From contig NIVC01001155.1 of NCBI GenBank assembly GCA_002269645.1, positions 45,731 to 109,730 of the forward strand: a DNA stretch of 64,000 bases, given 5' to 3'. Below the pieces are notes generated by a model that saw only the letters and a program-made list of their open reading frames with translations, was not told the DNA's origin and did no database searches. Of the stretch, positions 5,498 to 55,455 are shown one piece after another (positions within the stretch are counted from its first letter, which is position 1; the number at the start of each line of letters is the position of its first letter). This stretch comes from Macrostomum lignano (lineage: Eukaryota). A program made the translations under genes and the position numbers.

Positions 5498-5520
5498 GTT
5501 TTGCTAGCTAAATTCTGGTT

Positions 5521-7730: not shown

Positions 7731-7768
7731 ACCGCGCCCCTTTGAGGGTAGCCCACCAACCTTCTATC

Positions 7769-14559: not shown

Positions 14560-15170
14560 ATTTTGCTTTAGGGTGCCAAAATGAGTGCCTGCGGCGCTAA
14601 AATGAGTGCCTGAATGCGGCACCAAAATGAGTGCCTGCAGCGCCAAACTGAGTGCCTGAATGCGGCGCCAAAATGAGTGCTCGAATGCGGCGCCAAAATG
14701 AGTGCCTGCGGCGCCAAAATAAGTGCCTGAATGCGGCGCCAAAATGAGTGCCTGAATGCGGCGCCAAAATGAGCGCCTGCACCGCCAAAATGAGTGCCCG
14801 AATGCGGCGCCAAAATGAGTGCCTGCGGCGCCAAAATAAGTGCCTGAATGCGGCGCCAAAATGAGTGCCTGCGGCGCCAAAATGAGTGCCTGAATGCGGC
14901 GCCAAAATGCGCGCCTGCACCGCCAAAATGAGTGCCTGCGGCGCCAAAATGAGTGCCTGAATGCGGCGCCAAAATGAGTGCCTGCGGCGCCAAAATGAGT
15001 GCCTGAATGCGGCGCCAAAATGAGTGCCTGCGGCGCCAAAATGAGTGCCTGAATGCGGCGCCAAAATGAGTGCCTGCGGCGCCAAAATGAGTGCCTGAAT
15101 GCGGCGCCAAAATGAGCGCCTGAATGCGGCGCCAAAATGAGTGCCTGCCTGCACCGCCAAAATGAGTGCT
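14560..15170. repeat. Minisatellite of mixed 21- and 25-bp units GCGGCGCCAAAATGAGTGCCT(GAAT)
   Basis: Direct reading. Confidence 0.92.
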
Positions 15171-26762: not shown

Positions 26763-28793
26763 AACCAGGGGCTTTAGCACCAGGGGCTTTAGCACCAGGG
26801 GCTTTAGCACCAGGGGCTTTAGCACCAGGGGCTTTAGCACCAGGGGCTTTAGCACCAGGGGCTTTAGCACCAGGGGCTTTAGCACCAGGGGCTTTAGCAC
26901 CAGGGGCTTTAGCACCAGGGGCTTTAGCACCAGGGGCTTTAGCACCAGGGGCTTTAGCACCAGGGGCTTTAGCACCAGGGGCTTTAGCACCAGGGGCTTT
27001 AGCACCAGGGGCTTTAGCACCAGGGGCTTTAGCACCAGGGGCTTTAGCACCAGGGGCTTTAGCACCAGGGGCTTTAGCACCAGGGGCTTTAGCACCAGGG
27101 GCTTTAGCACCAGGGGCTTTAGCACCAGGGGCTTTAGCACCAGGGGCTTTAGCACCAGGGGCTTTAGCACCAGGGGCTTTAGCACCAGGGGCTTTAGCAC
27201 CAGGGGCTTTAGCACCAGGGGCTTTAGCACCAGGGGCGCCAGCACCAGGGGCGCCAGCACCAGGGGCTTTAGCACCAGGGGCTTTAGCACCAGGGGCGCC
27301 AGCACCAGGGGCGCCAGCACCAGGGGCTTTAGCACCAGGGGCTTTAGCACCAGGGGCTTTAGCACCAGAGGCTTTAGCACCAGGGGCTTTAGCACCAGGG
27401 GCTTTAGCACCAGGGGCTTTAGCACCAGGGGCTTTAGCACCGGGGCTTTAGCACCAGGGGCTTTAGCACCAGGGGCTTTAGCACCAGGGGCTTTAGCACC
27501 AGGGGCTTTAGCACCAGGGGCTTTAGCACCAGGGGCTTTAGCACCAGAGCTTTAGCACCAGAGCTTTAGCACCAGGGGCTTTAGCACCAGGGGCTTTAGC
27601 ACCAGGGGCTTTAGCACCAGGGGCTTTAGCACCAGGGGCTTTAGCACCAGGGGCTTTAGCACCAGGGGCTTTAGCACCAGGGGCTTTAGCATCAGGGGCG
27701 CCAGCACCAGGGGCTTTAGCACCAGGGGCTTTAGCACCAGGGGCTTTAGCACCAGGGGCTTTAGCACCAGGGGCTTTAGCACCAGGGGCTTTAGCACCAG
27801 GGGCTTTAGCACCAGGGGCGCCAGCACCAGGGGCGCCAGCACCAGGGGCTTTAGCACCAGGGGCTTTAGCACCAGGGGCGCCAGCACCAGGGGCGCCAGC
27901 ACCAGGGGCTTTAGCACCAGGGGCTTTAGCACCAGGGGCTTTAGCACCAGAGGCTTTAGCACCAGGGGCTTTAGCACCAGGGGCTTTAGCACCAGGGGCT
28001 TTAGCACCAGGGGCTTTAGCACCGGGGGCTTTAGCACCAGGGGCTTTAGCACCAGGGGCTTTAGCACCAGGGGCTTTAGCACCAGGGGCTTTAGCACCAG
28101 GGGCTTTAGCACCAGGGGCTTTAGCACCAGAGCTTTAGCACCAGAGCTTTAGCACCAGGGGCTTTAGCACCAGGGGCTTTAGCACCAGGGGCTTTAGCAC
28201 CAGGGGCTTTAGCACCAGGGGCTTTAGCACCAGGGGCTTTAGCACCAGGGGCTTTAGCACCAGGGGCTTTAGCATCAGGGGCGCCAGCACCAGGGGCGCC
28301 AGCACCAGGGGCTTTAGCACCAGGGGCTTTAGCACCAGGGGCTTTAGCACCAGGGGCTTTAGCACCAGGGGCTTTAGCACCAGGGGCTTTAGCACCAGGG
28401 GCTTTAGCACCAGGGGCTTTAGCACCAGGGGCTTTAGCACCAGGGGCGCCAGCACCAGGGGCGCCAGCACCAGGGGCGCCAGCACCAGGGGAGCCAGCAC
28501 CAGGGGCGCCAGCACCAGGGGCGCCAGCACCAGGGGCTTTAGCACCAGGGGCTTTAGCACCAGGGGCTTTAGCACCAGAGGCTTTAGCACCAGGGGCTTT
28601 AGCACCAGGGGCTTTAGCACCAGGGGCTTTAGCACCAGGGGCTTTAGCACCAGGGGCTTTAGCACCAGGGGCTTTAGCACCAGGGGCTTTAGCACCAGGG
28701 GCGCCAGCACCAGGGGCGCCAGCACCAGGGGCTTTAGCACCAGGGGCTTTAGCACCAGAGCTTTAGCACCAGAGCTTTAGCACCAGGGGCACC
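26763..28793. repeat. About 2-kb array of a 15-bp unit AGCACCAGGGGCTTT (about 135 units) with GCGCC variants
   Basis: Direct reading; source of the LKPLV artefact ORFs. Confidence 0.97.
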
Positions 28794-29658
28794 AGCGGTG
28801 GTCATTTTTGTCACCGCCCCCCTTATCCTTCTGTATTATGCACTGCATGGTTACGGCTGGTACGCAGTTATGTATCTGATAACTAAGGCCATCATAAACC
28901 AAATCAAGCTTTTGAGGTTTCAAGATAAAACTTAAAACGAGACAGGCTCACCAAAAAATCGGATCCGCGGAATTACCGCTAGCTTTTGCACTGCCGTTGT
29001 TGAATGGTTGCTCAAGAACTTCATCTATAACAAAACAAACGAATGAAGAAACGTTGGTTCAGGTAGTGCTGTGACGGAAAGATTTTAAGCTATCGTTTGT
29101 CTTCAAAGTCTTGTCCTATCATTTTTCGAAATCTTGCTTCAAGGAGCACAAGAAGATGACTGCAATATGAATGCTGACCTATCATATTTCTGGCTTTCCC
29201 TGAAAACTTTTCAGCCAGTTGAAAAGAGAAGAAAGACCCAACTGCAATGGGCTGCCGCATACCGTGAAGCTAAGTTCGCTGCATTTTCGGAACCAGCAGT
29301 GTGCAGCAAGACGTGAAACCGAGCCTGCAGCTGGAATGGAGGATGATGTTGAGTAGTTTCCGCAGGACCTCTAAAAACTGTTAGAACAAGGAGAACTAAA
29401 GGTGCGACACTCGCGTTTCATGGGAAAAGTTTTATAGGCCACTTTAGATAAATATTTTGCTGGATACTACCGCCTTGCAATTAACATTCATTTATTTATT
29501 TACAGATTCTACGAGTACACGGCTAATCGAATCCTTCGAAGAGTTAGAAATGGAGTTTAAGGCACGCAACTAATTTTAGATACTAATACATACCTTGTTG
29601 GAAAAAATGTGTTGCCTTAAAACCTCTTCCACACTGATGCCTTTGGGTCTCACTCACG

Positions 29659-32134
29659 CAAGTGACGGATGGTACGCATAGCGTACCATAGACTATTTTG
29701 TGGCCGCAAAAATTTTGACAGCACACCCTCAAGTGCCGGCTAGGCGGGACTTTTCGTTCTTTGACTATTTTTCTTTCTATACGAGCGGCTTCCTATTTTA
29801 CAGCGTTTATACGACCGTAATCGTTTCATTTCGATCTTTAATTCACAGCTCCACCGATTGACCGTCTGGTTTGTGTGTTTCTTTATTCCCGTTATTGTTT
29901 CTTTTTCCTGTGTTACCTACTTTATATACTATTTTCTGTACGAGTATTATACTTTTTTAGTGTGCTTTCCATTTGTGTATATATCCTATTTGTAACGCTT
30001 TATTAGGCTGTATTACATTGCTGTACATTATAAGTTATTTAAATTAGAACTTTTTGTATCAAATATGGCCATGCAGTTTATTCGTCAGGCTCTTGTGGGT
30101 CTTCGTGGTGGGCCAGCTGAGGTCTCGAGCGATTCTGACGACGGTTCCGACGACGAGATTTCAGAGGACGAATCTATGGATGAAGATGTGACTGAAGAAC
30201 AAGGCGATGATGCTAAAATGCAGTGGCGAGGCGTGACTGAGGAGACGGATACACGAGAAAGCGCTGATGTGGAATTTTTCGGTGTTGAAGGCCTGAATCA
30301 TGGACTTCATGTTCCCGCCGACGTTGAGAATGGAGTCGAAAGTTTCTTTTCAATGTTCGTTACTGATGATCTATTGCAAATGTTGTGCAAGTTTACTAAT
30401 GCTAGGGCATGGGCCGAGGTGCATTCATGCGAAGAAGATGGTCTTGGTCAAATGCCTGCAAGGTTGTCAGCTTGGCGCGACTGCACAATTTCCGAGATGA
30501 AAAAGATGCTAGCCATAATCATGTACATGGGTGTCGTCAAAAAGCCTGACATGCGTGCATATTGGTCCACTGATGAGTTTTACGGCAGCAGTCTGTTTCA
30601 AGGCGAGTTTTGCATCGCTCATTTTCAAGCAGTATATTCCCAAGAAGCGGGCTCGCTTTGGAATAAAGACATACTGCCTCGTGGACGCCAAAAACGGCTA
30701 TCTCTGGAACATACTGATTCATTCAACACCGGATGAAAATGCTCGTTTCGGAGAGGGCCTGGGCTGCGCTGAACTCAGCATAACTGAAAGAATTGTTGTT
30801 GAGCTCATGCAAGATCTTTTCGGCTTAGGCTACCAAGTACTCACTGATAGTTTCTTCACGTCAATCAGACTTGCCAGTTTTCTTCTCGAGAAAGGCACCA
30901 CAATCACCGGTTCAGTCCAAGCAAACCGAGGCATCCCAGCCTCGCTTAAGACTGCTAATATTCCAGCTCCCGGCTTTCGCTTCATGCGTAAAGGTGATAT
31001 CCTGGCAATAAAAATGACCGACAGGAAGGCAAGTGGGGTCAAGACTTTGCATCTCCTCGACACTCACGGTGTTGCCGGCTCGGTCGAGCGACAGACCATC
31101 CGCCGCGGAGGGCTAGTGCAGCTGGTTAGAAAGCCTACGAGCGTAGCGAACTACACCAAATTTATGGGAGGAGTCGATAGACTGGACTCGTGTCTTCAAC
31201 CGTACCACCCTAACAGGAAGACATACCGATGGCATCAAAAGTTAGCGCTCCATCTGATGTTTCAACTGGTGCACAATTCGTGGGTTGCCTACCGAATTTC
31301 AGGTGGATCCCGGCCTTTTCTGCGATTTTTGGAAACCTGCATCACTTGGCTATTGAGAAGCACGGGCCCTGGGAAGTTGCGGTGCATGCGGACGACGCCT
31401 GCTACACACGCTGGTGACGGACACTTCCCTTCGAAGCTCCCATCTACCCTGGGCAATCCACGTCCGTCTAAGCGCTGTCGCGTCTGCTATAGAAATGGAG
31501 TATCAAAGCGCACAGTGACCGTCTGCAAAGGTTGTGTGAATCAGCCGGGACTGTGCATTGGAGACTGCTTTGAGCAGTGGCACGTTTAAGTGCAGTCCCC
31601 GTTTCTTGTGAATCCTCAGCCAATTTTCAGAGTTTGCACACGTTTGCGCAACTTATCCTGTCTGTACGAAACTTAAGTATATATTGTTGTTTCTTCTTCT
31701 CGTTCTAATGTCAGATATGGATTAGATATTGTAAAAGTTGTAAAATTGTGCTAGCCATTCACACTGAATGACATCAGACAATTTAGTTATCTGATAAAAT
31801 TACAAGTGCTTATGAGTTCCAGGTAGCTCGTATGGGATCGAAACACAGGAAAAAAAATCTTCGAAACTTCAAATATCAGTTCTTTTTTCCATACCTCCTC
31901 TGCAGAAAATTGTGTTAAGTTTCTCGTGTTTTTATACTTTTCTAGACTGTTCGATTCAAATTATATGCCTTTATTTGTTCCAGTTTTTATAGCAAGAAAT
32001 TGTTGAGAAATTGTTTGATAAATTATGTTATTTCTATAGTATTTAACAATAAAAAGCTTTTAATAAAAAACTAGAAAGCCACGAGTTAATTGACTCGCTA
32101 ATCATGGCGTGCATGGCGTACCATCCGTCACTTG
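29659..32134 (+). mobile_element. piggyBac-like DNA transposon, internally deleted
   Basis: Perfect 19-bp inverted repeat CAAGTGACGGATGGTACGC (29659-29677 and 32116-32134) around a PGBD-type transposase; exact termini unclear and no TTAA TSD found. Confidence 0.8.
30065..31589 (+). pseudogene. PGBD4-like transposase with a frameshifting deletion that removes the first catalytic Asp region
   Basis: KQYIPKKRARFGIKTYCLVD, TDSFFTS, FMGGVDRLD, C-terminal CRVC...CKGC...LC...CF..WH. YWSTDEFYGSSLF joins directly to FKQYIP at about 30600, and the usual xIDE motif is absent. Confidence 0.85.
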
Positions 32135-36900: not shown

Positions 36901-37497
36901 CCTTTTCCCATCGCATCTCTCATCTCGCCTCTCTTCTGTAAACTCTCATCTCCTCTTTATTCTTCTCTCTCCCCCCGTTCCCTCACCTTTCCACTCTCAT
37001 CTGGGTGGGTCTGGGTTGGCCCGGATTGGTCCGCCCCCATTGGGGAGTTTCACTTTCATATCAAGAGTATTCCCTGCTCAGGCTCAGCTGCCCTGCCTCG
37101 CTTATGCAAGCAACTTTTTTCTGTTCATTTTATTCGTCATTTTTTAATCATTGAGCTTGTAGAATTCGAGTGCACTAAATATATTCGGTTTTTCACAGGG
37201 GCATGTTCTCCCTTCCTTCGCCTGCCACGCCTTTGCTGCGCCCTTGCCTTTCTTCCTCCTTTCTTGCCTTTTGTCGTTCGTTAAAAGTACGTTACTGCAA
37301 TTCGGAAGAAATACTTTGAAGCGTTATACCTTCTCCAGTGTTCTTTTCCAAGAATTTTGCTACAATATAGCCATTTCGTACATTTCATGGTACTTGCTGG
37401 GTTCCCGTCGAGGTTCTGATCCCTAGCAGCTCTCTGATCAAAATTCAGAGACGATTGGACTCAGATTCTCGACTACTCGGTCGCTGAGACCTGCTGA

Positions 37498-40242
37498 ATG
37501 GCCGGTGTCGAGTGTCACTCAGGCTGGTTGCCTGAAGTCAATTGCGACAGTCGAGAGATCGAGAGAATTCTGAAAGAGCTACAAAATACAAACAATACAT
37601 GGATGAAAGGTTTCTGCCAGCTTGCTATTGCCCACCTGTATACTCTACCTGGCTTCTGTAATTTGACTGAAGCATGGAAGGCTCTGAATTCCGCCAGTCA
37701 GCCAGACGAAGAGGTAGAACATAACTTATTTACCCTACCGACCATTGACATTCGATTTCTTGCCACAGCAGTGAAACTAAGGCTTGAGAAAATGCAGCTA
37801 GGACACCCATCTAAGCACGAAGATTTAAAGAATGAATTAACGACTTTATGGGCAGCTCAGGATGAGTCGGTGAAGGCGACTTGCTTGGTTGCCAAAGGCT
37901 GGACGATGCACTGGTTTGCAGTCGGACCGCAGCGAGACGAAGTTTTGAAAGTGTGCCACAAAGCATTAAAGGATGCTCAAAAAAAATTAGCCACTATACC
38001 TGATGCTGCTGATCAATTGAGTCATGTAACATTTCTCTGTCTGTTCGAGCTGGCTTGTACATTTTTCCGACGGCGAAAAGATGAGCAGAAAATTTTTCAG
38101 GAAGAACTTGACCTGTGGACTACTTCCAAAATGTTATATGATGAAAACGAATGGAATCACCCGCTGTTTGAGCTTGAATTTCACAGGGCCGTCGCCTCCA
38201 TTCCGCTGTACTTTGATGACTGCAGAACTTTCGCCGATGAGAAGTATTGTGAAATCATGAATAAGTCTAGCTTGTTGAATCAACTCTTTGAAGCTTATTG
38301 CACTCTTCCGGAAATCTACGACGTGCTGAAGAAACAAAAAAAGGCAGAGATTTGGCACAGGATTTCGAAACTAAAGTAAGTAAATTGCTGGAAGAGGGAA
38401 CCAATTTCAACGAATGCGCGATGCGTAAAAGATTTTTGCGTCGAAGAATCGTGGCAGCTGATCTAGAGGACGCGATCGACATGCTCAAAAGTGAAGAGAA
38501 CGAGTACTGGTTTGCCAATAGACTCATCATGCTAGAATTAAAATTGTATTTTGCTGATGAATCGATGTTCTCTTCTTGATTCGTTGAAAATTTCATGCAA
38601 CGCTTCGAGTCTCTCTGCATTAATATTCCACTGAAGGCTTCAAAATTTCGCTTGAAAAAAGGCATATTTCTGTTGAAGTGCGGCAGAGTCAAAGAAGGAA
38701 TGCACAGCCTCACCTGGGCAATGAACGACTATCTGCATTCTCCGTTAAGCTTTGAGCCTTCTAACTTTGTTAAGCTAAAGGATGCAGAGTCGTTTTTGAA
38801 GGATTCTGGATCTGATTTTTATCTGATTTGGATTGAAAGTCAGTTTAAAACTGATTTTAAGACTTACCACGTCGATGACTCTATTCAAAAGTACCGGACT
38901 GAGTTCACAAGGAAAGATCTGACGAACGAACATCGCCATTTCATCAGTGAGCACATCGGAAGGCTGCTGATGCAGAAGTCGCAGTTTGAAAAGGCGGAGC
39001 AAATGTTCAGGTCTCTGCCTGACGCACTAGAGCACAAAAACGCAATGATTGCTGACTCTCTCTTGTGCCAGGCGGAGATTTTGTTGAGCGGTGATGACGC
39101 CACAGAAGTTTGCAAGGCCAAGCTACAGGAGTTTAAAGCACACCCAGATAATGCAGTTTACATAACCAGCATCGGGATGCGGCTGTACCTGCTGAACGAG
39201 TGTGCAAAGCTGGGCTGCAGAGACGCCATTCAAGAGGCGCTGCTTCTGCTGGAGGACATCCGGAAGCAGAGTGGCAGAGGTCACTTGTTGCAGCAAGCTC
39301 CAAACCATTTGTTCGTGCACAGCACTTGCGTTTACGAGTTCTGCTCCCGGCTGCTTCAGCTGAGAGAGCAGGGCTTCCAAATTGAGCGAAGAAAAAGCTT
39401 TGTAGATTCTAGCGGTGACCAGATGGGTGACATGCTAGACAAAGTAGAGCAAATCTTGGCCACTGAGTTGTATCCAAGAAAAATTCGACTGAAAATGACA
39501 CAGCTGGGCTTGAAGTATGAATCAGTAGAGGAAATGCTTCAGAGTCCCGAGGCTGAGCGCAGCATTTGGCACACGCTGGAGGAGTCCCGAAAAGCACTCG
39601 ATAGCTTCTGGGCTCAATTCGTCTCTAAATTGGAGAAGCAGGAAGTTGTCTCCGAGTCGAAGAGCGTTCCGAGATATTACCCATTTGCCCGCCATAGGCG
39701 GGCATCAGAGATTTGCTGTGTGACAACTAAGTCATCATTACCTACATTTGCAACACAGAATTGCCTCTTATATGTGGCTTGTAATCCAACATGCTCAATT
39801 AAATTTAGACACGTGGCCTCAGGAGCTGCGAGCACTGATTGACCGAATCCAGCCTCAGCCACAGCCGAGGCAACAGCAGCAGCAGAGACCATCCCAGCCG
39901 TCTTTTCGCTCTCCTTCGCAGCATGAGGCGCTGGCGGGGATTAGGGATCGGGATGCTTTCTACTCAACACAACATCAAGGAAGTTGGCGGTCAGCAATGG
40001 GTCAGTGCAGGGCTGCGCCATCTGCTGCTAAAGGTGAGGACGCTCTTGACTCATCACAACAGCAAGGAAGTTGGCGGTCAGCAATGGGTCAGCGCAGGGC
40101 TGCGCCATCTGCTGCTGAAGGTGGGGACGCTCTTGACTCATCACAACAGCAAGGAAGTTGGCGGTCAGCAATGGGTCAGCGCAGGGCTGCGCCATCTGCT
40201 GCTGAAGGTGGGGACGCTCTTGACTCACCGCAACAGCAATGA
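37498..40242 (+). pseudogene. Copy A of the helical/TPR-like gene; zinc-finger exons deleted
   Basis: ORFs 37498-38379, 38298-38579 and 38595-39842; homology to copy B breaks at 39697 and resumes at 39704 (B 54244); terminal exon from about 39810 carries 87-bp repeats. Confidence 0.75.
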
Positions 40243-40535
40243 AGTCGGCCGCAAACAACATCAGGTCAGCAGAAGGACAAAATTCGCGACACAGAGAAGT
40301 CAGAGGGCCAGCAGAGCACTAAAAGCAACGGATTTGAGGATCCCCCTGAAGACGAAGGATAAGCAATGCTTTAAAATGACTGTCTTTGCTGAATTTTTCC
40401 TGACTACTAAACTTGTACTTCCCCAAACTTCAGCGAATGATTATTCAGTAAAGCCACTGATTCAAAATCAGGCGTCCAATTTAAGGTAGCTAGCTAATCG
40501 TTAGCTGCAGCTTAAGGGCAGCGCAGCTTTGTCTT

Positions 40536-40562: not shown

Positions 40563-41804
40563 CAGTAGGAATACCAAGCCATTTTTCCGCCCGTCGAACT
40601 ATCAAGGGGGGGGGGAAATTTCCCCCCCCTGACAATTTTTTTTGCTGCGCCGGAACGGAGCAACGCAGGCACACGAAATTCAAGAACACGGGCTAACTTT
40701 TTGTTGCGCACCTTCTCAAACAAGAATCAAGTCGCCAGCCCTCCGGACCGTCGAGATATTCGACGATTCTGCCAGAAGGTCGGATTTTTCCCATAAGCGC
40801 TAGTGTATTCAGTACACCCCTGTGCGCCAATCAGCACTGCGCCTCAGTGCAGCCTTGCCAAGTCTCCAAATTTCATCAGCACGTCGACCACATGTGTCTG
40901 CATCAGTTCTGACTTCGTTGGTCACTAGCCTTCACCCAGGTGGAGCTTCTGGACCCTCAACAGCTGTGGCACCAGGTGACTATGGACACCCTGATGCGGA
41001 TTTCTCTAGTTTCGCCGATCAAGCCTCGACAGTGGGCAAGAATCAACCGTCAGACATTCTCAGCTAGTCTCTCAAGCATTCCGTCATCATCCCGACGCAT
41101 CAGGTGTCCTTGCTCACCTCGTGCCACCTGTTGAAGGTGCCGACGGTGTCGGGGTGATGACTGAAGGCTCCAGAGACTGGCTGAGAATGTCTGACGGTTG
41201 ATTCTTGCCCACTGTCGAGGCTTGATCGGCGAAACTAGACAGATTCTTATCAGGCTGTCCATAGTCACCTGGTGTAATGTGTTGAAGGAGCCGACGGCGT
41301 CGGGATGATGACGGAATGCTTGAGAGACTAGCTGAGAATGTCTGACGGTTGATTCTTGCCCACTGTCGAGGCTTGATCGGCGAAACTAGAGAAATCCGCA
41401 TCAGGGTGTCCATAGTCACCTGGTGCCACAGCTGTTGAGGGTCCAGAAGCTCCACCTGGGTGAAGGCTAGTGACCAATGAAGTCAGAACTGATGCAGACA
41501 CATGCGGTCGACGTGCTGAGGAAATTTGGAGACTTGGCAAGGCTGCACTGAGGCGCAGTGCTGATTGGCGCACAGGGGTGTACTGAATACACTAGCGCTT
41601 ATGGGAAAAATCCGACCTTCTGGCAGAATCGTCGAATATCTCGACGGTCCGGAGGGCTGGCGACTTGATTCTTGTTTGAGAAGGTGCGCAACAAAAAGTT
41701 AGCACGTGTTCTTGAATTTCGTGTGCCTGCGTTGCTCCGTTCCGGCGCAGCAAAAAAAATTGTCAGGGGGGGGGGAAATTTCCCCCCCCTTGGTAGTTCT
41801 ACTG
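40563..41804. mobile_element. 1242-bp palindromic non-autonomous DNA element inserted at TTAA
   Basis: TTAA|CAGTAG...CTACTG|TTAA; ~490-bp inverted arms (about 40605-41097 and 41297-41790); absent from copy B, whose empty site reads CTGATTGATG at about 54995. Confidence 0.9.
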
Positions 41805-41962
41805 TTAATGACATCAACCAAACCTAACCAAAATGTACTCACGACTTGATCAGACCCGGATCTCCCACTGTATTCTATCAATCTGGTCGTTCTATATTCG
41901 TGCGTTGGATTAAATTTGGCATACAAAGTGAACAAAAGGCCAAGAAAAGCAAAATTCAATTG

Positions 41963-42275
41963 GGCCTGGCCATAGACTGCAGACACGTATTTATTCCTCA
42001 CTTGGGCCCAGCCATAGACTGCAGACACGTATTTATTCCCCACTTGGGCCTGGTCATAGACTGCAGACACGTATTTATTCCCCACTTGGGCCCAGCCATA
42101 GACTGCAGACACGTATTTATTCCCCACTTGAGCCTGGCCATAGACTGCAGACACGTATTTATTCCCCACTTGGGCCCAGCCATAGACTGCAGACACGTAT
42201 TTATTCCCCACTTGAGCCTGGCCATAGACTGCAGACACGTATTTATTCCCCACTTGGGCCCAGCTATAGACTACA
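41963..42275. repeat. 42-bp minisatellite GCCATAGACTGCAGACACGTATTTATTCCCCACTTGGGCCCA, about 7 units (copy A)
   Basis: Direct reading. Confidence 0.92.
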
Positions 42276-44099
42276 CAGAAGTATTTTTGCCTGGCGCAGT
42301 AAACCTCCAATGCTTAAATAATATTTTACTTTTTTTAACAGCTTTTTATCGGCTAGTCTATATTTACAAATATATATATGTGATGCAATATTACGTAATA
42401 ACCTTTAGTCCTCCACTATGTAGCAAGCGCCGCACAGTCTGTACTTAAATTTTTAGTTTTTTAGATTTTTAGATTTTTAAAAAGTTGTATTAAAGCACGA
42501 AACAGTTAAAATCTGGTTTTATTTTTCGAGTCTCCGGTTTAAAGTTTGTACTTTTTTTCGAAACTTTCGCTGGTCAAGCCAGTTTGTGGCAGTTTTTTAA
42601 AACCGTTGAAATTTGTTTTGATTTTTCCAGTCTCTGGTTTACAGTTTGTGTTTTTAGGTAGGTTTGTCAGTCAAGCCGTTTTTGGCAATCAATCACTAAC
42701 AATTAATTAATCCATAACTGTGAAATATCCTTTAACTCACTCCAAGCTTTAGCCCTTATTTATGGACTAATAGGTGTCAGGGTTAATAAGTGTTGTTTAA
42801 CTGATTATGGCTGTGGATAATTTTATGCTACTATTATTATTTTGCTCGTATTATATTATAACTACTATTTTATGTCTAGTCAGTTATCCTCAAGATTTTA
42901 ATATGCATACTAATTATTCATATAAACTAATATATCGATATATGAGGCTACCGCTATCCCCATCCGGATATGTCTGTCTCTGTCTACCTGTGTCGCAACG
43001 CTTATTGCGCAGCGGGAAAGGCACTTCAACATAAAGAGTCTAATATTGACGTTTTGAATTTTACTTTTGAAGCGACAGTATTACTGTAACCCTGAAGACG
43101 AAGAAAAAGAATGCCTTAGCTAGTTAGAGATTGTGTTTGCTGAATTTTTCCTGTCTACTAAAATTTTACTTGCACTTTAGGTTATTTGCCTAAATCTGTG
43201 GAATAGCTTCCCAAAATCTAAGCGAATGATTATCCAGTTAAGCCACTAAATAATAATTCAGACGTCAAATTACAATAGCTAACTTTTTGGCAGTTTTTAG
43301 AACATTTAAAATCTGTTTTCATTTTCTAATCTCTGCTTTACAGTTTTCCTTTTTCGCTACTTTTGCCATTCTAGCCAGTGTTTATGGCAGTTTTTAAACA
43401 CTAATAGGTGGGCAGGGTTAATAAGTGTTGCTTCACAGATTATGGCTGTGGATAATTTTTGGCTACTAATATTTTTATCATCATATGATTATCATCATCA
43501 TATTAATTATAAACTAATATATCGATATAAGGTTAACGCTATCCCTATCTGGATATGTCTACCTGTGTTGCAACGCTTATTGCGCAGCCGAAAAAAGCTT
43601 CAACAGAGTCTAATATTGATGTCTTGAATTTTACTTTTTAAGCAACAGTATTACTGTTGGTAGTACTACAGTAGCAGTAGTACTTCGCCCCTTCAACTGC
43701 ACACACTTGTGCTTGCTGATCAACGTCAGCAAATGCACTCTGTTGGAATGAGGTCCTTCCCAGCTGCTTCACAAGGATGTAGTGAATGTGTCGTCAGTGG
43801 AATGTCCATGCAAGATGTCTTCGAGCTATCGTAGATTCTCACTTTAAGATTTGTATCCAGTGCCTGTTCAACACGATGATGTCCTCTTGGTTCCATTGTT
43901 GTTTCTCTCATAGCTCGTATTAGGACTATATAAATATCGGATTGTGAGCTCTATATCTTACAATTTCTCGTGCCGGATTCGCGCCAGTCGCCACAGCCTG
44001 ATGAGCAGTGATGAATTGAGTTAGAAGCTGCTGGACGAGACTATGGATGTGCCATCATTTGATTTTGCCCACAGATACTAGAAGAACAACAATTGTTGT

Positions 44100-47624: not shown

Positions 47625-48144
47625 CCCACCCCACCGTGGAGCGGACCGCACTCGCGGGTTATTCTTAGCGTGGGATGGTCTCCGCTAGCTGGCGGCCATA
47701 AACTGCATCTGTCTCTGTGTCGCGGAGGTGGGCGGGCGTCTTTTGGAGGGGCTTTTATTTTTGCCCCGGGCAGCTCAGACCCGGCTGCTTAGTTTCGCTC
47801 TTGAACACGCAATTTTTCCTTCGACTTCATTTGTCCTTTTTAATCCCCAAACCTATCGAAATTGAGAGCAATAAATATATTCGATTTATCACCGGATAAC
47901 CTCCTTCCTGTCCTTCCTCGGCGTCGTTCGCTAAAAGTACGTTACTGCAATTGGGAAGAAAAAAGTGTTACCTGTCCCCCTTTTCCAGTGTTCTTTTCCG
48001 AAAATTTTTCTACAATATAGTCAGGTTGTAAATTTCAGGGTACGAGCTTGCTAGATTCCTGGCGAGGTTTCAGTCACTAGCAGCTCAAAATTCAGAGACG
48101 ATTGGACTCAGATTCTCGACTTCCCGGTCGCTGAGACCTGCTGA

Positions 48145-51100
48145 ATGGCCGGTGTCGAGTGTCACTCAGGCTGGTTGCCTGAAGTCAATTGCGACAGTCG
48201 AGAGATCGAGAGAATTCTGAAAGAGCTACAAAATACAAACAATACATGGATGAAAGGTTTCTGCCAGCTTGCTATTGCCCACCTGTATACTCTACCTGGC
48301 TTCTGTAATTTGACTGAAGCATGGAAGGCTCTGAATTCCGCCAGTCAGCCAGACGAAGAGGTAGAACATAACTTATTTAACCTACCGACCATTGACATTC
48401 GATTTCTTGCCACAGCAGTGAAACTAAGGCTTGAGAAAATGCAGCTAGGACACCCATCTAAGCACGAAGATTTAAAGAATGAATTAACGACTTTATGGGC
48501 AGCTCAGGATGAGTCGGTGAAGGCGACTTGCTTGGTTGCCAAAGGCTGGACGATGCACTGGTTTGCAGTCGGACCGCAGCGAGACGAAGTTTTGAAAGTG
48601 TGCCACAAAGCATTGAAGGATGCTCAAAAAAAATTAGCCACTATACCTGATGCTGCTGATCAATTGAGTCATGTAACATTTCTCTGTCTGTTCGAGCTGG
48701 CTTGTACATTTTTCCGACGGCGAAAAGATGAGCAGAAAATTTTTCAGGAAGAACTTGACCTGTGGACTACTTCCAAAATGTTATATGATGAAAACGAATG
48801 GAATCACCCGCTGTTTGAGCTTGAATTTCACAGGGCCGTCGCCTCCATTCCGCTGTACTTTGATGACTGCAGAACTTTCGCCGATGAGAAGTATTGTGAA
48901 ATCATGAATAAGTCTAGCTTGTTGAATCAACTCTTTGAAGCTTATTGCACTCTTCCGGAAATCTACGACGTGCTGAAGAAACAAAAAAAGGCAGAGATTT
49001 GGCACAGGATTTCGAAACTAAAGTAAGTAAATTGCTGGAAGAGGGAACCAATTTCAACGAATGTTCGATGCGTAAAAGATTTTTGCATCGAAGAATCGTG
49101 GCAGCTGATCTAGAGGACGCGATCGACATGCTCAAAAGTGAAGAGAACGAGTACTGGTTTGCCAATAGACTCATCATGCTAGAATTAAAATTGTATTTTG
49201 CTGATGAATCGATGTTCTCTTCTTGATTCGTTGAAAATTTCATGCAACGCTTCGAGTCTCTCTGCATTAATATTCCACTGAAGGCTTCAAAATTTCGCTT
49301 GAAAAAAGGCATATTTCTGTTGAAGTGCGGCAGAGTCAAAGAAGGAATGCACAGCCTCACCTGGGCAATGAACGACTATCTGCATTCTCCGTTAAGCTTT
49401 GAGCCTTCTAACTTTGTTAAGCTAAAGGATGCAGAGTCGTTTTTGAAGGATTCTGGATCTGATTTTTATCTGATTTGGATTGAAAGTCAGTTTAAAACTG
49501 ATTTTAAGACTTATCACGTCGATGGCTCCATTAAAAAGTACCGGACTGAGTTCACAAGGAAAGATCTGACGAACGAACATCGCCATTTCATCAGTGAGCA
49601 CATCGGAAGGCTGCTGATGCAGAAGTCACAATTTGAAGAGGCGGAGCAAATGTTCAGGTCTCTACCTGACGCACTAGAGCACAAAAACGCAATGATTGCT
49701 GACTCTCTATTGTGCCAGGCGGAGATTTTGTCGAGCGGTGATGACGTCACAGAAGTTTGCAAGGCCAAGCTACAGGAGTTTAAAGCACAGCCAGATAATG
49801 CAGTTCACATAACCAGCATCGGGATGCGGCTGTACCTGCTGAACGAGTGTGCAAAGCTGGGCTGCAGAGACGCCATTCATGAGGCGCTGCTTCTGCTGGA
49901 GGACATCCGGAAGGAGAGTGGCAGAGGTTACTTGTTGCAGCAAGCTCCAAACCATTTGTTCATGCACAGCACTTGCGTCTACGTGTTCTGCTCCCGGCTG
50001 CTTCGGCTGAGAGAGCAGGGCTTCCAAATTGAGCGAAGAAAAAGTTTTGTAGACTCTAGCTGTGACCAGATGGGTGACATGCTAGACAAAGTAGAGCAAA
50101 TCTTGGCCACTGAGTTGTATCCCAGAAGAATTCGACTGAAAATGACACAGCTGAGCTTGAAGTATGAATCAGTAGAGGAAATGCTTCAGAGTCCCGAGGC
50201 TGAGCGCAGCATTTGGCACACCCTAGAAGAGTCCCGAAAAGCGCTCGATAGCTTCTGGACTCAATTCGTCTCTAAATTGGAGAAGCAGGAAGCTGTCTCC
50301 GAGTCTAAGAGCGTTCCGAGATATTACCCATTTGCCCGCCATAGCTGTGATCTGAAAAGCAGCACTGAAAGCTTTTCAAACATTTTCAAAAACAATTGGA
50401 GCGATCAAGCAAAACTGTTTACTTCACTACTTCAAAGCTTGAAAAGCACAATTGAATGCCTCGACAAGGCTAAGGAGGAGGGACACGAACTTAATGAATG
50501 CTTGAATGCTCTGGAAAATATTGACGAAGCTAAGTTAAAAGATGAAGTATCAGATGATCAGCTAAACGATTTCAAACATAAACTGGAGAAGCTCAAGAAA
50601 TTTCGCAACACTGCGACAAGTTCCGCATGTAGTAGTCAGTCAAAGCAAGCAGGCTCAATCGACAGGCTTAGAAATTCCAGTGAGAAATTTAACGAAATGC
50701 TACAGAAACCATTCCCACTCGCGTTTCGAGCGAATGACGAAGTCTGTAAATGGATGATCCGGAAGGAAGAAGCCATTGATTCTAACCAAGGTTGTTGGCA
50801 TGTACACTGGTGCAACGAAGTCAACTCAGATAAGCACGATGAGCAGGTTAATCTTGCCAAATTCAACGAAAAAATAAAAAAAAGATTTAATCAGAAGCAG
50901 AGTGGGCCAGTAGATGTTCTGGCTTTGGCTCATTACGCTGCGGAATTCGCTGAAGAGGCCAGGCTCGTTCTCGAAGAGTACACGGTAAGTTTTTCTTAAT
51001 TCTATTTTTTTAAGAATCAAAGTAACTGTTTTGATTAGACGTTGTAAAATGGAGATCATCGAACAAAGATGATTCAAATGCTGTTTTTAAGCTCTTTTCG

Positions 51101-54100
51101 ATAGTGTAGCAGGTGTAATTTTACTTATTTGTTCCATCTCGCAATTTCCACTAAATGCCACCAAGTTGTAGCAGATTTATTTGTTCTGCCTAATTGAATC
51201 ACTCCGTTTGTTACGAGCGTATGACTCTTTTCTAGAAAATTTCCTGATTCACTAGATTTCTTTGGTAAGACACTGTTCTAAATTCATAAATTAAGCCCGA
51301 AATTACAGCGTTTCCGGGGACCAAGGGTGTCCGGCGGCGAGCCTTAATACCTAATATTTGTCTGTCTTCTAATGCCTAATAATTAACATCTAATCTTATG
51401 GCCTTCTTAATACCCCTTGAGCCTGTACGGCTTTATCTCTACTACTGGGTCTGTACGACCTCTATTGCCTGTACGGCCTTTTCCCTACTTCTGGCATAAG
51501 AAATGAATAAGCAAAGATCATGTCTCAGCAGAAATTTCCTTTAGCAAAAGAGGCAAGCTAGGAACAAACTGGAGCTTGCCCAAGTTAGCTGGTTTTATTT
51601 TCATGCCAGGCGAAGCTTTTATATAATAAACAGAGGGGGTGTGGGGTGCATCGTAATTGGCGGGGACAACTTAAAACAAAATTAGATAAGAATTTTAGCA
51701 AAACTAGGATTTATAAAAAATAATACTGTATAAAACAAAGGATTTCTGATTACTTGCTAAATTACATTCGCATGTAGCTACTTATAGTAATACAATGGGG
51801 ATTGGCCAGACCCTACATCAATAGCAAAAGCAGACGTTTGAAATATTTTGCTAAGCTTTGACGTTAGCATAAACTTAAATTCACTTAGAAGCTCGGCTGA
51901 AAATATAAAATACGGATTCTATTCCACTTTTTCTATTTTTAAATTTTAGAGAACCGAAAGTAGTGGGGTAAAAAAATTGCTGACATTTGCAAACATTTAA
52001 TTTTCCGACAGATCTATAAAACTCGGTTTACAACCAATATACCCTGTATCATAAAACTAAATTCGATTTGCAGTACCCAGAGTTAACCATTCCAACGAAG
52101 CCAGACGCCATCGGTGAAAACTTCGAGTGGAGCCTTGTCTGCTACTCGTGTGCTCAGCCGAACGACGTCCTGCGCAGCAGATGGAGCCGCTTGCAGAATG
52201 ATTGTGCCAACTGTGACAAGTGCATTCTTTTGGTCAGAGAGAAGGCCAGTGCGGCACCAAGTGACGTTTGGCAGCGTGTCCGACCCAGACCAAGGAAACT
52301 CGTCAAGCTGGACATGTGCAGGAGGTACAGCGACATCAAATCCTGCAACGGCTGCAAGCGTTCTGAATGCGACTTCGCCCATGGAGACGCGGAGCTGCGG
52401 CTGTGGGAGCTGGAGAGAATCGGCAAGTTCTCCTTCAACAAGCTGCTGGAGTCCAAACGATCAGCTGGGTCAGAACTGCCGCTGATTCTCTGCGAGCGAC
52501 CTGCGGTCGAAGGAGGCTCGGAGCTCCAGATTGTCTACACGGGTCCGGAGTCGCTTCCCGCCAGACTCCCTACTGGGAAAGCACAAAATTCCTGCTATTC
52601 GCTCTGCAACTCGCTACTTGAAGGAACTGAGTGCCAGCATCAAGGCATATGCTTCAGTGCACACTGTGCTGAGGAGGAGCAGCTGTGGAACATCATGCAA
52701 CAGAAAAGAGGTAGAATCGAGATGCTTACATAATCCTAATCTTTACGTTATAGCTCGTAATATTGAATAACATAGAGTTAAGGCTCGTGTTACAATTCAT
52801 TAACTCTTTCAGATAATTGGCCCGAACATCTGGTTTTAAGAATCGACAAAATCGAGCCCGAACTCATTGGCTGGAGCCTCGAATCGAGCTGCGACTACAT
52901 GTACAAGCTGACCTGCTACAGGTGCTCCGAATCACTGGATCCTCTGAGAAGCAGATTCAAGCTGAAGGAAACACAGAACTGTGAGCGGTGCGACCAGAGC
53001 ATCCTGCTGGTCAGATCGAAGAACAATCAAATCAACAAGTGGCAACGCATCCGAGACAGACAAGGACATCTGGTCATATGTGATCTCTACCAATCAAACA
53101 AATGCAGGCGCTCCGAATGTGACTTCGCTCATGGCGATATGGAACTGAAGCTGTGGAAGCTGGAGAGAATCGGCAAGTTGTCCTTCGACAAGCTACTGAA
53201 GTCCAAACTGCCGCTGATTCTCTGCGAGCGGCCTGTGGTCAAAGGAGGCTCGGAGCCCCAGATTGTCTACACGGGTCCGGAGCCGCTTCCCGCCAGACTC
53301 CCTGAGAAACGTAAAGATTTCCACACTCTTTGCAACTCGCTGTTTGAAAGAAAAGAGTGCCCACAATACAAGTATAATCGCGGCAACTGCTTCTATGCTC
53401 ACTGTGCCGAGGAAGAGCAGCTGTGGAACATATTGCGAAAGAAAAGGGGTAAAATAATCATATTTATATGCTATTAGAGTACGTTTTTAACCTTCGCCAT
53501 TCTCTCTTCGTAAATTAGAACCATGGTTTGGACCATATAGATCTTATATTCCCTAGATAGGCCACTTTGTATGGCGTAAATAGAGAAAGCGCGACCGCTG
53601 TTTTTCGTCACTTGTGCGAAAAAGCCGACATGGGTTGCTTAAATTTTGAGTTAAGTAGCTTAGGGACACAGACGCTATTTTTGAGAATTTAATAGAACTT
53701 CTCATGAATTTAATAAAAAGCTACTCAATCAAACTATGAATTGTGCATGTACTGCAGAGACAACGGACGAAATTGAGTTCAGTAGTTGATTTTCGCGCTG
53801 TCGCGAGTTGCAAATGTTTTTACATTAGCTTTTATGGCCACATGAGTGGTTAATGAGTGGCCCATCTTGTGTATATATGATCTTTGGTTTGGACCCATGA
53901 TTGATTTGAGTGCGCATTTTAGCAGTGTGCATTGTAACACGATATAAATGTGTAAAAGCGTGCATTAAACGCTAAAAGCGTGCTTAAATGGCTCGTGATC
54001 GCGTATTGGCTGGAGTCATTTAATGTACGAGAAATGTATATCGTGTTACAATACAACTCAAGACTTGGTTTTTCTGGCTTAAATGTCTAGGTCACGAGTG

Positions 54101-54603
54101 CGCACTGTGCTCAAAACCAAGTATTGAATCCTATATTCGGCTGTAAAGGTTTTGATAAGCGGAATTTTCATCTATGGATCATCCTGTCAAATAGGGTCTC
54201 ATTTTGAATTGCAGAATTGTATGCGAAAATTGTATCTTTAGCTATCAGAGATTTACTGTGTGCCAACTAAATCATGTTACCCTTCCCATATAATCTGTCT
54301 ATATTAGACGCTGTTTTCTTGGCCTCTACCTACATGTACAAAATGCAATACAGAGTTACCTCTTACGCTCGTATCCAACATGCTCAATTAAATTTAGAGA
54401 AGTGGCCTCAGGAGCTGCGAGCACTGATCGACCGAATCCCGCCTCAGCAACAACCGAGGCAGCAACAGCAGCAGAAGCAAGGAAGTTTCGGAACTGAACA
54501 ACATTCCTTCGGAGGATGCGGCGCCCACAGGGCCAGCAACAGCAGATCAGAGCGGGGCTGCGCGGTAGGTCAGGATGCTCCTTGCTCAACGCAACAGCAA
54601 TAA
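48145..54603 (+). CDS. Copy B: long helical/TPR-like region plus two ZC3H7-type CCCH zinc-finger modules and a Gln-rich tail (about 1445 aa if both lesions are bypassed); may be a pseudogene
   Basis: Exons 48145-50984, 51950-51967, 52074-52710, 52813-53448 and 54398-54603 with consistent phases (0,0,1,1). Motifs WQRVRPRP...C...CDFAHGDAELRLWELER and C...C...C..AHCAEEEQLW occur twice. Frameshift at 48984-48990 and TGA at 49224-49226. Confidence 0.72.
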
Positions 54604-55121
54604 GGAACTTGGCGGCCGGCAACATCAAATCAGAGCGGGACTGCACCATCTGCTGTAGGTCAGGCTGCTTCTTACCCACCACAACAGCAATGAAGTCGGC
54701 CGCCAGCAACATCAGGTCAGCGGAAGGACAAAATTCGCGACACAGAGAAGTCAGAGGGCCAGCAGAGCTCCAAGAGCATCAGATTCGAGGATCTCCTTGA
54801 AGAGGAAGGATAAGCAATGCTTTTAAAAGACTGTCCTTGCTGAATTTTTCCTATCTACTATACTTGTACTTACACTTAAGTTATTCGTCTAACTCTCTGA
54901 AACAGCTTCCCGAAATTGAAACAAATTTTAGCGCACAAGGGCCGCTAAAAAGGAATCCGCGCAGTTTTGTCTTAATAAAATCAAATGAAACTCTGATTGA
55001 TGAAATCAACCTATACCTAACAAAAATGTGCTCGTGCCTTGATCAGATCCCTCATTTGTGCGATGGATCAAATTTGGTCTACAAAGTGAACAAAAATCTA
55101 AGAAAAGCAAAATTCAATTTG

Positions 55122-55455
55122 GCCCGGCTATAGACTACAGAAACGTATTTATTCCCCACTTGGGCCCGGCCATAGACTACAGAAACGTATTTATTCCCCA
55201 CTTGGGCCCGGCCATAGACTACAGAAATGTATTTATTCCCCACTTGGGCCCGGCCATAGACTACAGAAACATATTTATTCTCCCCTTGGGCCCGGCCATA
55301 GACTACAGAAACGTATTTATTCTCCCCTTGGGCCCGGCCATAGACTACAGAAACGTATTTATTCCCCACTTGGGCCCGGCCATAGACTACAGAAACATAT
55401 TTATTCTCCCCTTGGGCCCGGCCATAGACTACAGAAACGTATTTATTCCTCACTG
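55122..55455. repeat. 42-bp minisatellite GCCATAGACTACAGAAACGTATTTATTCCCCACTTGGGCCCG, about 8 units (copy B)
   Basis: Direct reading; paralogue of 41963-42275. Confidence 0.92.

Follow-up and report, generated by a model that had tools for sequence, protein, structure and literature searches.

The window, a 64,000-nt stretch of the Macrostomum lignano genome (contig NIVC01001155.1 of assembly GCA_002269645.1), carries on its forward strand a four-exon gene and, upstream of it, a truncated tandem copy of that gene (Table 1). When spliced, the four-exon gene gives a product that aligns gaplessly with the UniProt model A0A1I8J6S6 (P0063) at 99.45% identity, and several near-identical gene models are found at other loci of the M. 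lignano genome. The sequence-only reading had called the source an invertebrate, and it is indeed a flatworm; its view that the architecture was undescribed holds for the literature, in which no paper describing a flatworm IFIT-related family was found, but UniProt already contains partial gene models with this architecture, named as uncharacterised 'C3H1-type domain-containing protein'. Literature searches also returned nothing on invertebrate IFITs, on the M. lignano gene IDs, or on CCCH genes in Macrostomum. A Pfam search of all ORF pieces of the gene, with E values up to 1, gave neither TPR, CCCH nor any other family. Look-ups of the exact products (P0001, P0002, the 293-aa ORF, and a 585-aa ORF) in transcript and genome gene calls gave no record, and no NCBI (BOX15) transcript-based protein was found for the subfamily of this gene. 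In a word-indexed protein search, the repaired N-terminal 360 aa had no match and the finger modules matched M. lignano models only. Among the paralogue models, none was found to combine an intact N-terminus with the fingers, and no intact full-length fusion turned up. The window is also rich in retrotransposons and satellites and contains a piggyBac-type element.

Table 1. Features of the gene and of its tandem copy (positions are those of the window)
Feature	Position	Strand	Description
Gene	48145-54603	+	Four exons joined by GT-AG splice sites; stop codon ends at 54603
Exon 1	48145..50984	+	2840 nt, 947 codons coding, homologous to the family throughout; IFIT-related N-terminal region, TPR-like helical middle, conserved C-terminal domain; frameshift and stop inside
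Exon 1 donor	50985		GTAAGT
First ATG	48145	+	Start of MAGVECHSGWLPEV...
First reading frame	48145..49026	+	293 aa, contains the IFIT-related N-terminal region
Degraded IFIT motif	48157-48174	+	ECHSGW
A7 run	48983..48989	+	Frame shifts -1 relative to all homologues; context CA_AAA_AAG
In-frame TGA	49224..49226	+	Within homologous coding sequence; Arg at the same position in P0002
Downstream ORF, exon 1 part	49242..50984	+	From the first ATG past the TGA; 1073 codons, unbroken through exons 2-4
Family-specific C-terminal domain	50676..50984	+	About 85-100 aa, pattern ..W..W..VNSDKH...AHYAAEFAEE..
Exon 2	52074..52710	+	ZC3H7/HELZ2-type module
Exon 2, CxxC..CxxC	52140-52214	+	
Exon 2, WQRVRPRP	52269-52292	+	
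Exon 2, CCCH finger and ELRLWE	52317-52382	+	
Exon 2, second finger	52605-52664	+	Canonical C-x8-C-x5-C-x3-H
Exon 3	52813..53448	+	Diverged second copy of the exon 2 module pair
Exon 3, CxxC..CxxC	52914-52991	+	
Exon 3, WQRIRDRQ	53040-53063	+	
Exon 3, CCCH	53079-53132	+	
Exon 3, second CCCH	53331-53402	+	
Exon 4	54398..54603	+	Short Gln-rich tail (WPQELRALIDRIPPQQQ...), then the stop codon
Truncated tandem copy	37273..40420	+	N-terminal part that has the frameshift and stop of exon 1, then a deletion and an exon-4-like tail

When exon 1 was translated with its reading frame repaired, residues 4-938 of the 947 codons aligned with residues 10-880 of the M. lignano protein P0006 (BLASTP E 3e-28; phmmer E 1e-18, whole library), and the proteins that match it end to end form a small family of 870-1060 aa from M. 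lignano and a few other eukaryotes. The pentapeptide CHFTW, located in the loop that connects the first two N-terminal helices, is reported to be invariant in IFITs (PMC11462223). Members of the family begin with ECHFTW (P0006 and P0058), ECHFKW (P0011 and P0014), or ECPFSW (P0028); the window copy reads C-H-S-G-W at residues 6-10 (48160-48174), with two of the five positions altered. Among 177,635 PDB sequences compared with the family profiles, only IFIT5 (E 4e-6) and IFIT1 (E 4.5e-5) were significant, the next matches having E values of at least 0.009, and both alignments were in register from the N-terminus, including the non-TPR N-terminal helices. After the motif had been deleted from the profile, IFIT5 was still matched (E 8.3e-4) in an unchanged register. 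The hhalign probability of the family against IFIT was 96.1%, and P0006 and IFIT5 share 27.6% identity over 170 aa in a pairwise alignment. The sequence of the window copy alone gave no match to the IFITs; its link to them is transitive, leading from the window copy to the family (E 1e-18) and from the family to IFIT. Scanning JGI metagenomes with the alignment of the family gave no match. Taken together, the profile comparisons show that the N-terminal resemblance is a real but distant homology at the level of the family. The IFIT-like start of the sequence-only reading is thus borne out by the relatives, among which paralogues carry LECHFTW, and not by the window copy itself.

The AlphaFold model of the 293-aa frame is all-helical (pLDDT 71.9), and Foldseek matched it to generic TPR and 14-3-3 structures in the PDB, none of them significantly (best E 0.21); IFIT5 had the top TM-score (0.48) and the lowest rmsd among these matches, at a non-significant E of 0.93. 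For the middle and C-terminal region (six sequences), the AlphaFold model reached a pLDDT of 39.5 and was unusable. The flatworm family shares with IFIT5 (PDB 3ZGQ/4HOQ) and IFIT1 (PDB 4HOU) the (E)CHFTW motif at the same N-terminal position, about 160 collinear residues past the motif that include a KGWALLKFG-like segment, an all-helical TPR-like fold, coding sequence that lies nearly entirely on one large exon (the interrupted 2.84-kb exon 1 in the window; 3.1 kb in P0006), and tandem, apparently gene-converting paralogues. In contrast, IFITs are proteins of about 470-490 aa with nine TPRs and a closed clamp on the RNA 5' end; the flatworm core departs from this in being twice as long, with 870-950 aa (947 in the window copy) against about 480, and the family further has an extra C-terminal domain and appended putative RNA-binding modules. 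Because the IFIT similarity spans only the first ~170 of the 947 N-terminal residues, the earlier term 'IFIT-like solenoid' overstates the relationship. In the profile alignment, Lys150 of IFIT5, an RNA-contacting residue, pairs with Cys, Ser, or Trp in the family, and at Y156 several members have Tyr; most pocket residues fall outside the alignable region.

Exons 2 and 3 each encode a WQR(V/I)R...CDFAHGD.EL.LWE module in which all Cys/His ligands are kept. Their matches are frog, caecilian, and fish ZC3H7B proteins, with E values from 5.5e-11 to 6e-7, a snail HELZ2 that carries RNB, helicase, and OB_HELZ2 domains (P0009, E 1.9e-12), and a multi-module flatworm protein (P0007, E 6.7e-18); within ZC3H7B, the two exons match residues 393-515 and the later repeats. 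In the PDB, weak matches were obtained to a ZC3H7A finger (2D9M, E 0.023) and to the TTP and TIS11d fingers. The spacing C-x8-C-x5-C-x3-H is exact in the second finger of exon 2 and variant in the other three, and Pfam zf-CCCH did not reach E 1. A close relationship between the fingers of HELZ2 and those of ZC3H7 has been published (PMC10516660). Judged by their sequence, the modules belong to the ZC3H7A/B and HELZ2 type, as had been proposed for the C-terminus.

With ZC3H7A/B (RoXaN), the gene shares a composite module made up of CxxC...C/HxC, an 'LLV/LLAR' strand, W-x-[KR]-[IV]-R-P-x-P, a CCCH finger, and an E-L-x-x-W helix, which is present three times in ZC3H7B and twice here, as well as a TPR region N-terminal to the fingers. 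However, the N-terminal regions are unrelated: BLASTP and phmmer detected no similarity between the 947-aa region and the ZC3H7B N-terminus, that is, the ZC3H7-type three-TPR domain was not matched. The JAZ-type C2H2 finger, present in P0010, P0013, and P0020, is absent from the products of exons 2, 3, and 4 (Pfam, E up to 1), as is the long disordered linker from the gene, and an extra canonical CCCH finger follows each module. HELZ2 is an interferon-induced helicase and RNB exoribonuclease, and the N-terminus of the snail protein P0009 contains three copies of the same finger module. Two UPF1-like helicase domains flank RNB in HELZ2, whereas the 48145-54603 gene is without helicase, OB, and RNB domains; Pfam searches of all its pieces found no HELZ2-type helicase or RNB domain.

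Exon 1 ends in a family-specific domain that is predicted to form four helices. It matches P0011, P0012, P0014, P0017, P0019, P0024, and P0028 and has no match in the PDB or Pfam. A HEPN-like reading of this domain was dropped because its conserved N-x-x-K-H motif is without the Arg at the Rx4-6H position. Most of the uncharacterised M. lignano paralogues (BOX15_Mlig030191g2, P0006; Mlig006963g3, P0058; Mlig019237g1, P0012) and of the related ORFs in the ENA assemblies ERZ25074608 and ERZ26859043 have the full-length core of the window gene, consisting of an ECHF(T/K)W start, which P0012 lacks, a helical body, and a REHxI..W..W..VNxDKH..AHxAAEFAEE C-terminal domain, and each is likewise encoded on one long exon or ORF (a single ORF in P0011 and in P0014; L001 has a second paralogue 4 kb downstream). 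Unlike the window gene, these proteins are intact and without CCCH modules; RGG repeats form the end of P0006 and P0012, whereas the C-terminal domain is the last part of the others.

The sequence-only reading had placed the IFIT-like part on one very long exon of about 2.8 kb. Exon 1 has this length and is homologous coding sequence throughout, but it is not open, being interrupted by the frameshift at the A7 run and by the in-frame TGA. The paralogues read through both sites, and a tblastn alignment of P0006 passes directly across the TGA. Both defects recur in the upstream copy, where the A7 run is identical (38336-38342) and the same TGA lies at 38577-38579. All combinations of GT-AG introns that would remove the frameshift, the stop, or both have poor splice signals and lose conserved residues, for example KGIFLLK. 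With exon 1 broken in this way, ordinary translation cannot yield the full fusion protein here, and the locus probably no longer makes it. Both defects are in the first quarter of the gene; 3.2 kb spread over four exons are intact, and the splice sites are canonical.

The tandem pair with domain loss that had been reported at this locus was confirmed. Positions 37273-39697 are 96.6% identical at the nucleotide level to 47923-50344, after which the upstream copy jumps from the equivalent of 50344 to the homologue of 54558 onward. The equivalent of 50345-54557 (4.2 kb) is deleted, and because of this jump the upstream copy is without the remainder of exon 1 and without either finger exon. Its tail (39748-40242) is homologous to exon 4, as is the tail of the paralogue P0005/P0066. 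The two copies show a gene-conversion pattern: they differ at 5 sites across 48125-49500 and at 33 across 49500-50344, and their 5' flanks are about 20% diverged. In the shared part 3' of the stop, 15 changes are synonymous and 18 non-synonymous (dN/dS 0.31); 15 of 33 compares with about 7 synonymous changes expected under neutrality, and the downstream part of the gene is under constraint. Between exons 2 and 3, dS is 0.75 and dN/dS is 0.44, with the zinc ligands retained.

We consider it fairly probable that this is a lineage-specific flatworm gene which arose by domain shuffling, that its IFIT-like start has been severed, and that, if it is expressed, a 1073-aa protein is the most likely product. 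The ancestor would have been a 'long IFIT-related' protein encoded on one large exon, with an N-terminal subdomain homologous to the CHFTW-bearing start of vertebrate IFITs, a long TPR-like helical body, and a four-helix C-terminal domain. It may have gained a finger module of the ZC3H7A/B or HELZ2-N-terminus type as extra exons, the finger-module exon then duplicating in tandem; other branches of the family carry RGG repeats in the position of this module. Because RGG repeats occupy the same position in those branches, the helical core is most likely an RNA-acting platform and the appended modules would give it RNA affinity; its targets are likely to be RNAs of the cytoplasm, plausibly those of viruses or transposons. 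A 1-nt deletion in the A-run and a probable CGA-to-TGA nonsense mutation would have cut off the N-terminal 360 codons, and a gene-conversion tract may have copied both defects between the tandem copies, of which the upstream one would be a truncated relic. The product initiated at ATG 49242 would comprise the helical middle, the C-terminal domain, two finger modules, and the Gln-rich tail, without the IFIT-like start. The data show the homologies, the exon structure, the two defects, the duplication, and the constraint on the downstream part; RNA binding and the identity of the product are inferred, as is the RNA sensor of an immune gene family proposed earlier, and any immune role is conjecture.

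Both copies could instead be dead pseudogenes in a repeat-rich region, the intact downstream ORF being too young to have decayed. The presence of the frameshift and the nonsense codon in both copies, the loss of 4.2 kb with all fingers from the upstream one, the retrotransposons, piggyBac-type element, and satellites that fill the window, and the absence of the exact product from transcript and genome gene calls and of a BOX15 protein for the subfamily are all in keeping with such decay. We nevertheless think it unlikely, since the defects are confined to the first quarter, the four exons of the remaining 3.2 kb keep canonical splice sites, synonymous changes exceed the neutral expectation 3' of the stop, every zinc ligand is kept in both modules, and the genome has several near-identical gene models at other loci. 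That the gene is intact and yields a full fusion of ~1430 aa strikes us as distinctly improbable. The frameshift would then stem from a homopolymer error in the assembly or from a programmed -1 slip, and the TGA would be a readthrough codon or an error. The heptamer A_AAA_AAG does fit the slippery form X_XXY_YYZ, the shift is exactly -1, and the N-terminal region of the window copy (20-26% identity to its relatives) is no more diverged than the rest of the protein. Long-read assemblies make homopolymer errors, and the A-run frameshift could be a systematic error of this kind. However, programmed -1 frameshifting at the A7 run was rejected, as no RNA structure was found 3' of the slippery site (z 0.31) and a stop follows, and for the full fusion recoding or an error would have had to occur twice, independently, at sites 240 nt apart. 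The TGA, a substitution where long-read errors are typically indels, is present in both copies. P0006 (residues 1-1036) lies on one intact 3.1-kb exon in the same assembly, GCA_002269645.1; long ORFs therefore do survive that assembly. No database protein contains the N-terminus of the window copy.

It is very hard to reconcile the data with an ordinary flatworm ZC3H7 orthologue (TPR plus CCCH) whose IFIT resemblance is generic TPR similarity, although TPR proteins often cross-match and ZC3H7A/B also have an N-terminal TPR region together with these finger modules (10.1101/2025.04.21.649502). The 947 N-terminal residues are unlike the ZC3H7B N-terminus, the JAZ-type C2H2 finger is missing, and a separate M. 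lignano protein, P0007, is closer to ZC3H7 in layout. Moreover, the PDB chains include TPR proteins such as LapB, yet only IFIT5 and IFIT1 were significant, in register even without the motif. ZC3H7 orthology was rejected.

Both the architecture of the gene and its relationship to IFITs are of real interest. The origin of IFITs has been placed in jawed vertebrates (PMC3688568), and they are said to be absent from invertebrates (PMC3688568; PMC11462223); the flatworm proteins, which have CHFTW and align collinearly with IFIT subdomain I over about 160 residues, bear on the claim of a jawed-vertebrate origin. An IFIT-related start and ZC3H7/HELZ2 fingers occur in one gene; therefore, three vertebrate RNA-directed antiviral or regulatory lineages meet in one invertebrate architecture. 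The 48145-54603 locus exemplifies it less well, since its IFIT-like part is cut off. Flatworms, to our knowledge, have no interferon system. As a speculative extension, which we hold with low confidence, an IFIT-related family may predate vertebrates, with longer members that repeatedly gained RNA-binding add-ons (ZC3H7/HELZ2 fingers and RGG repeats), survived in flatworms and a few other invertebrates, and serve in interferon-independent surveillance or repression of viral or transposon RNA. If true, the RNA-clamp module at the N-terminus of IFITs would date back to early bilaterians instead of jawed vertebrates, and flatworms would offer a tractable model for the ancestral function of this module; should the homology hold structurally, its origin and ancestral function would become testable in the genetically tractable Macrostomum. 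ZC3H7A/B have been reported as chordate-only (10.1101/2025.04.21.649502), a claim on which the ZC3H7/HELZ2-type modules found outside chordates, in the flatworm and the snail, also bear.

The window is eukaryotic, and all close protein matches come from the flatworm Macrostomum lignano. It carries a four-exon gene with GT-AG borders at every intron, whose spliced product from ATG 49242 is 1073 aa long. This product aligns without gaps to the UniProt model A0A1I8J6S6 at 99.45% identity, indicating that gene predictors had already joined its exons; the existing models are all fragments, and their sole name is "C3H1-type domain-containing protein".

Features of the window and family ORFs on two eukaryotic ENA contigs (L001 and L002, in contig coordinates)
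Feature	Position	Strand	Details
Exon 1	48145-50984	+	four-exon gene
Exon 2	52074-52710	+	four-exon gene
Exon 3	52813-53448	+	four-exon gene
Exon 4	54398-54603	+	four-exon gene
652-aa ORF	7361-9319		upstream of non-LTR retrotransposon; no Pfam match
Non-LTR retrotransposon	9312-13050	+	APE-type endonuclease 9312-10157; reverse transcriptase and RNase H 10133-13050
Gypsy-type LTR retrotransposon	20789-25350	-	gag with zinc knuckle and aspartyl protease 23587-25128; RT, RNase H, integrase 21057-23663
PiggyBac-type transposase	30065-31589	+	DDE_Tnp_1_7 and its zinc finger
Tandem satellite arrays	1064-1749, 4446-4892, 5518-6788, 14572-15169, 26764-28796, 41957-42286, 55115-55454		periods roughly 15 to 42 bp
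Family ORFs, L001	6001-8610, 11374-11664, 12666-14610		tandem with fragment and second paralogue
Family ORF, L002	6001-8643		single ORF

The N-terminal 947 codons belong to a family of long helical proteins. A phmmer search with the sequence after frame repair was run exhaustively over 1.84 billion representative proteins and returned 40 matches, and a scan of JGI metagenome contigs found no members; the family is rare. The M. lignano paralogue P0006 (BOX15_Mlig030191g2), encoded by a single 3.1-kb exon, is collinear with the entire N-terminal unit (4-938 vs. 10-880), while partial alignments were obtained with the M. lignano paralogues P0058 and P0012 and with six ORFs in ENA assemblies (P0011, P0014, P0017, P0019, P0024, and P0028). 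In both ENA loci fetched (L001 and L002, from assemblies ERZ25074608 and ERZ26859043), one uninterrupted ORF encodes the family protein, and G+C is 38%, compared with about 50% in the single M. lignano locus fetched. Family members consist of an N-terminal region opening LECHFTW, ECHFKW, or ECPFSW, an extended helical body with weak TPR matches, and, at the C-terminus, a conserved domain of roughly 85 aa (REHxI..W..W..VNxDKH...AHxAAEFAEE), for which no relatives were found in PDB or Pfam. The sister branches P0006 and P0012 end in RGG repeats in place of zinc fingers. The P0006 repeat is long and built of GRGGSEHF units; that of P0012 comprises hundreds of residues of RGGGAGGRGRGGSH units.

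The sequence-only reading proposed an IFIT-like N-terminus, which holds for the family but not for the window copy by itself. Searched against all PDB sequences, the full-length family profile had IFIT1 (4HOU) as its sole significant match (E 4.5e-5), and one restricted to the N-terminal 415 residues matched IFIT5 (3ZGQ and others; E 4e-6, next match E 0.13), in register over residues 14 to 174. The CHFTW motif, which sits in the loop behind the first helix, is reported to be invariant across all IFITs (PMC11462223). With the motif removed from every sequence, IFIT5 remained the sole match (E 8.3e-4) in an unchanged register. Comparison of the family with IFIT1 and IFIT5 fragments by hhalign gave a probability of 96.1%, and P0006 is 27.6% identical to IFIT5 across 170 residues. 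In contrast, the window copy has CHSGW as its motif and, alone, does not match IFITs; the family's similarity ends at about residue 170. IFIT5 Lys150, an RNA-contacting residue, is not kept in the family alignment. The AlphaFold model of the first 293 residues of the window copy is all-helical (pLDDT 71.9, pTM 0.71). Foldseek with this model gave no significant match, only helical-repeat proteins below significance; IFIT5 had the top TM-score (0.48) and the smallest rmsd, but with E 0.93, making weak structural evidence for the likeness. We conclude that the N-terminal subdomain of the family is homologous to IFIT subdomain I and that the family lies outside IFIT proper.

The C-terminal modules proved to be of the ZC3H7/HELZ2 type, as had been proposed. 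Exons 2 and 3 each encode, in this order, CxxC...CxxC, ILLVR, and WQR(V/I)R(P/D)R, followed by a CCCH finger with an ELxLWE helix, a conserved linker (LPLILCERP..QIVYTGPE..LPARLP), and a second CCCH finger, spaced exactly C-x8-C-x5-C-x3-H in exon 2, with AEEEQLWN after it. The first part of the module matches ZC3H7B from frogs, a caecilian, and a killifish, with E ranging from 5.5e-11 to 6e-7, and the N-terminal end of a HELZ2 homologue from a snail (P0009; E 1.9e-12) with RNB, helicase, and OB_HELZ2 domains. The relatedness of HELZ2 and ZC3H7 fingers has been published (PMC10516660). The snail protein, from Batillaria attramentaria, is 3172 aa long and has ZC3H7/HELZ2-type modules at its N-terminus. 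This part also matches the M. lignano multi-module finger protein P0007 (1474 aa), in which exon 2 has its counterpart in the last module together with the linker and the final finger. Exons 2 and 3 (dS 0.75, dN/dS 0.44, every ligand intact) are, on this divergence, old duplicates. ZC3H7B has three such modules. No similarity to ZC3H7B was found in the N-terminal region of this gene and no JAZ-type C2H2 finger was found in the gene, so it is not a ZC3H7 orthologue.

The composite gene thus joins an IFIT-related long helical protein to ZC3H7/HELZ2-type fingers. The RNA-binding appendages or relatives are of three independent kinds, which suggests an RNA-directed function for the helical core. 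ZC3H7, HELZ2, and IFIT all work on cytoplasmic RNA, and two of the three, IFIT and HELZ2, are induced by interferon and act against viruses or transposons, which makes a role in foreign-RNA handling plausible. No published description of this flatworm family was found in the literature searched; since automated annotation uses "IFIT-like" names in some invertebrate genomes, we regard ours as the first only provisionally. IFIT origin has been placed in jawed vertebrates, with invertebrate counterparts not found (PMC3688568; PMC11462223), and ZC3H7A/B have been called chordate-only, with no relatives outside chordates (2025 preprint 10.1101/2025.04.21.649502). Against the latter statement, the flatworm P0007 and snail P0009 sequences indicate that the ZC3H7/HELZ2-type module clearly predates chordates. 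The value of these results rests in the family-level finding, of which the window copy is a damaged example.

Homologous coding sequence runs throughout the 2840 nt of exon 1, in keeping with the sequence-only reading of one very long exon (about 2.8 kb), yet its frame is broken twice. The frame opened by ATG 48145 closes at 49026; homologous translation resumes in the −1 frame at an A7 run (48983-48989), and this frame contains a TGA (49224-49226). P0006, P0011, and P0014 align to both flanks of the A7 run with unbroken sequence, and at the TGA the paralogue P0002 has Arg and a tblastn alignment with P0006 passes through. Among all GT-AG introns able to mend the frameshift or the stop, none was credible, each having poor splice signals and losing conserved residues. 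Judged from these interruptions, the IFIT-like start is cut off from the remainder at this locus.

The predicted tandem pair with domain loss was borne out. Positions 37273-39697 are 96.6% identical to 47923-50344, after which the upstream copy jumps to the homologue of 54558 onward (about 80-87% identity), so that it lacks both exons encoding fingers as well as the end of exon 1. The A7 run and TGA are identical in both copies. The copies differ at 5 positions over 48125-49500 and 33 over 49500-50344, and their 5′ flanks are about 20% diverged. Such uneven divergence is the pattern of a gene-conversion tract across the N-terminal part, which accounts for the shared defects. Beyond the stop, the part shared by the copies has a dN/dS of 0.31, with 15 synonymous and 18 non-synonymous changes (neutral expectation about 7 and 26), indicating that this part has been under constraint. 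Read most economically, the locus would make the 1073-aa ORF product, if any, with the upstream copy left as a relic. The main rival to this reading is a pair of fully dead pseudogenes. A lesser alternative is an intact gene masked by recoding or an assembly error: the A-run context, C-AAA-AAA-G, formally fits a −1 slippery heptamer, but no RNA structure was found downstream of it (z 0.31) and the TGA would still follow, and −1 frameshifting was rejected.

The window also carries several mobile elements and repeats. The reverse transcriptase/RNase H part of the non-LTR retrotransposon is divided among adjacent frames, and the 652-aa ORF may be its ORF1. Direct repeats of 222 bp (20789-21010 and 25129-25350, 99.5% identical) flank the gypsy-type element, and the piggyBac-type transposase, lying in two overlapping frames, is probably degraded. 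Between the gene copies is a 500-bp inverted repeat (40596-41098 and 41297-41799, arms 98% identical and about 200 bp apart), possibly a foldback or terminal-inverted-repeat element. An array with a 42-bp period is present 3′ of both gene copies and therefore belonged to the duplicated unit.
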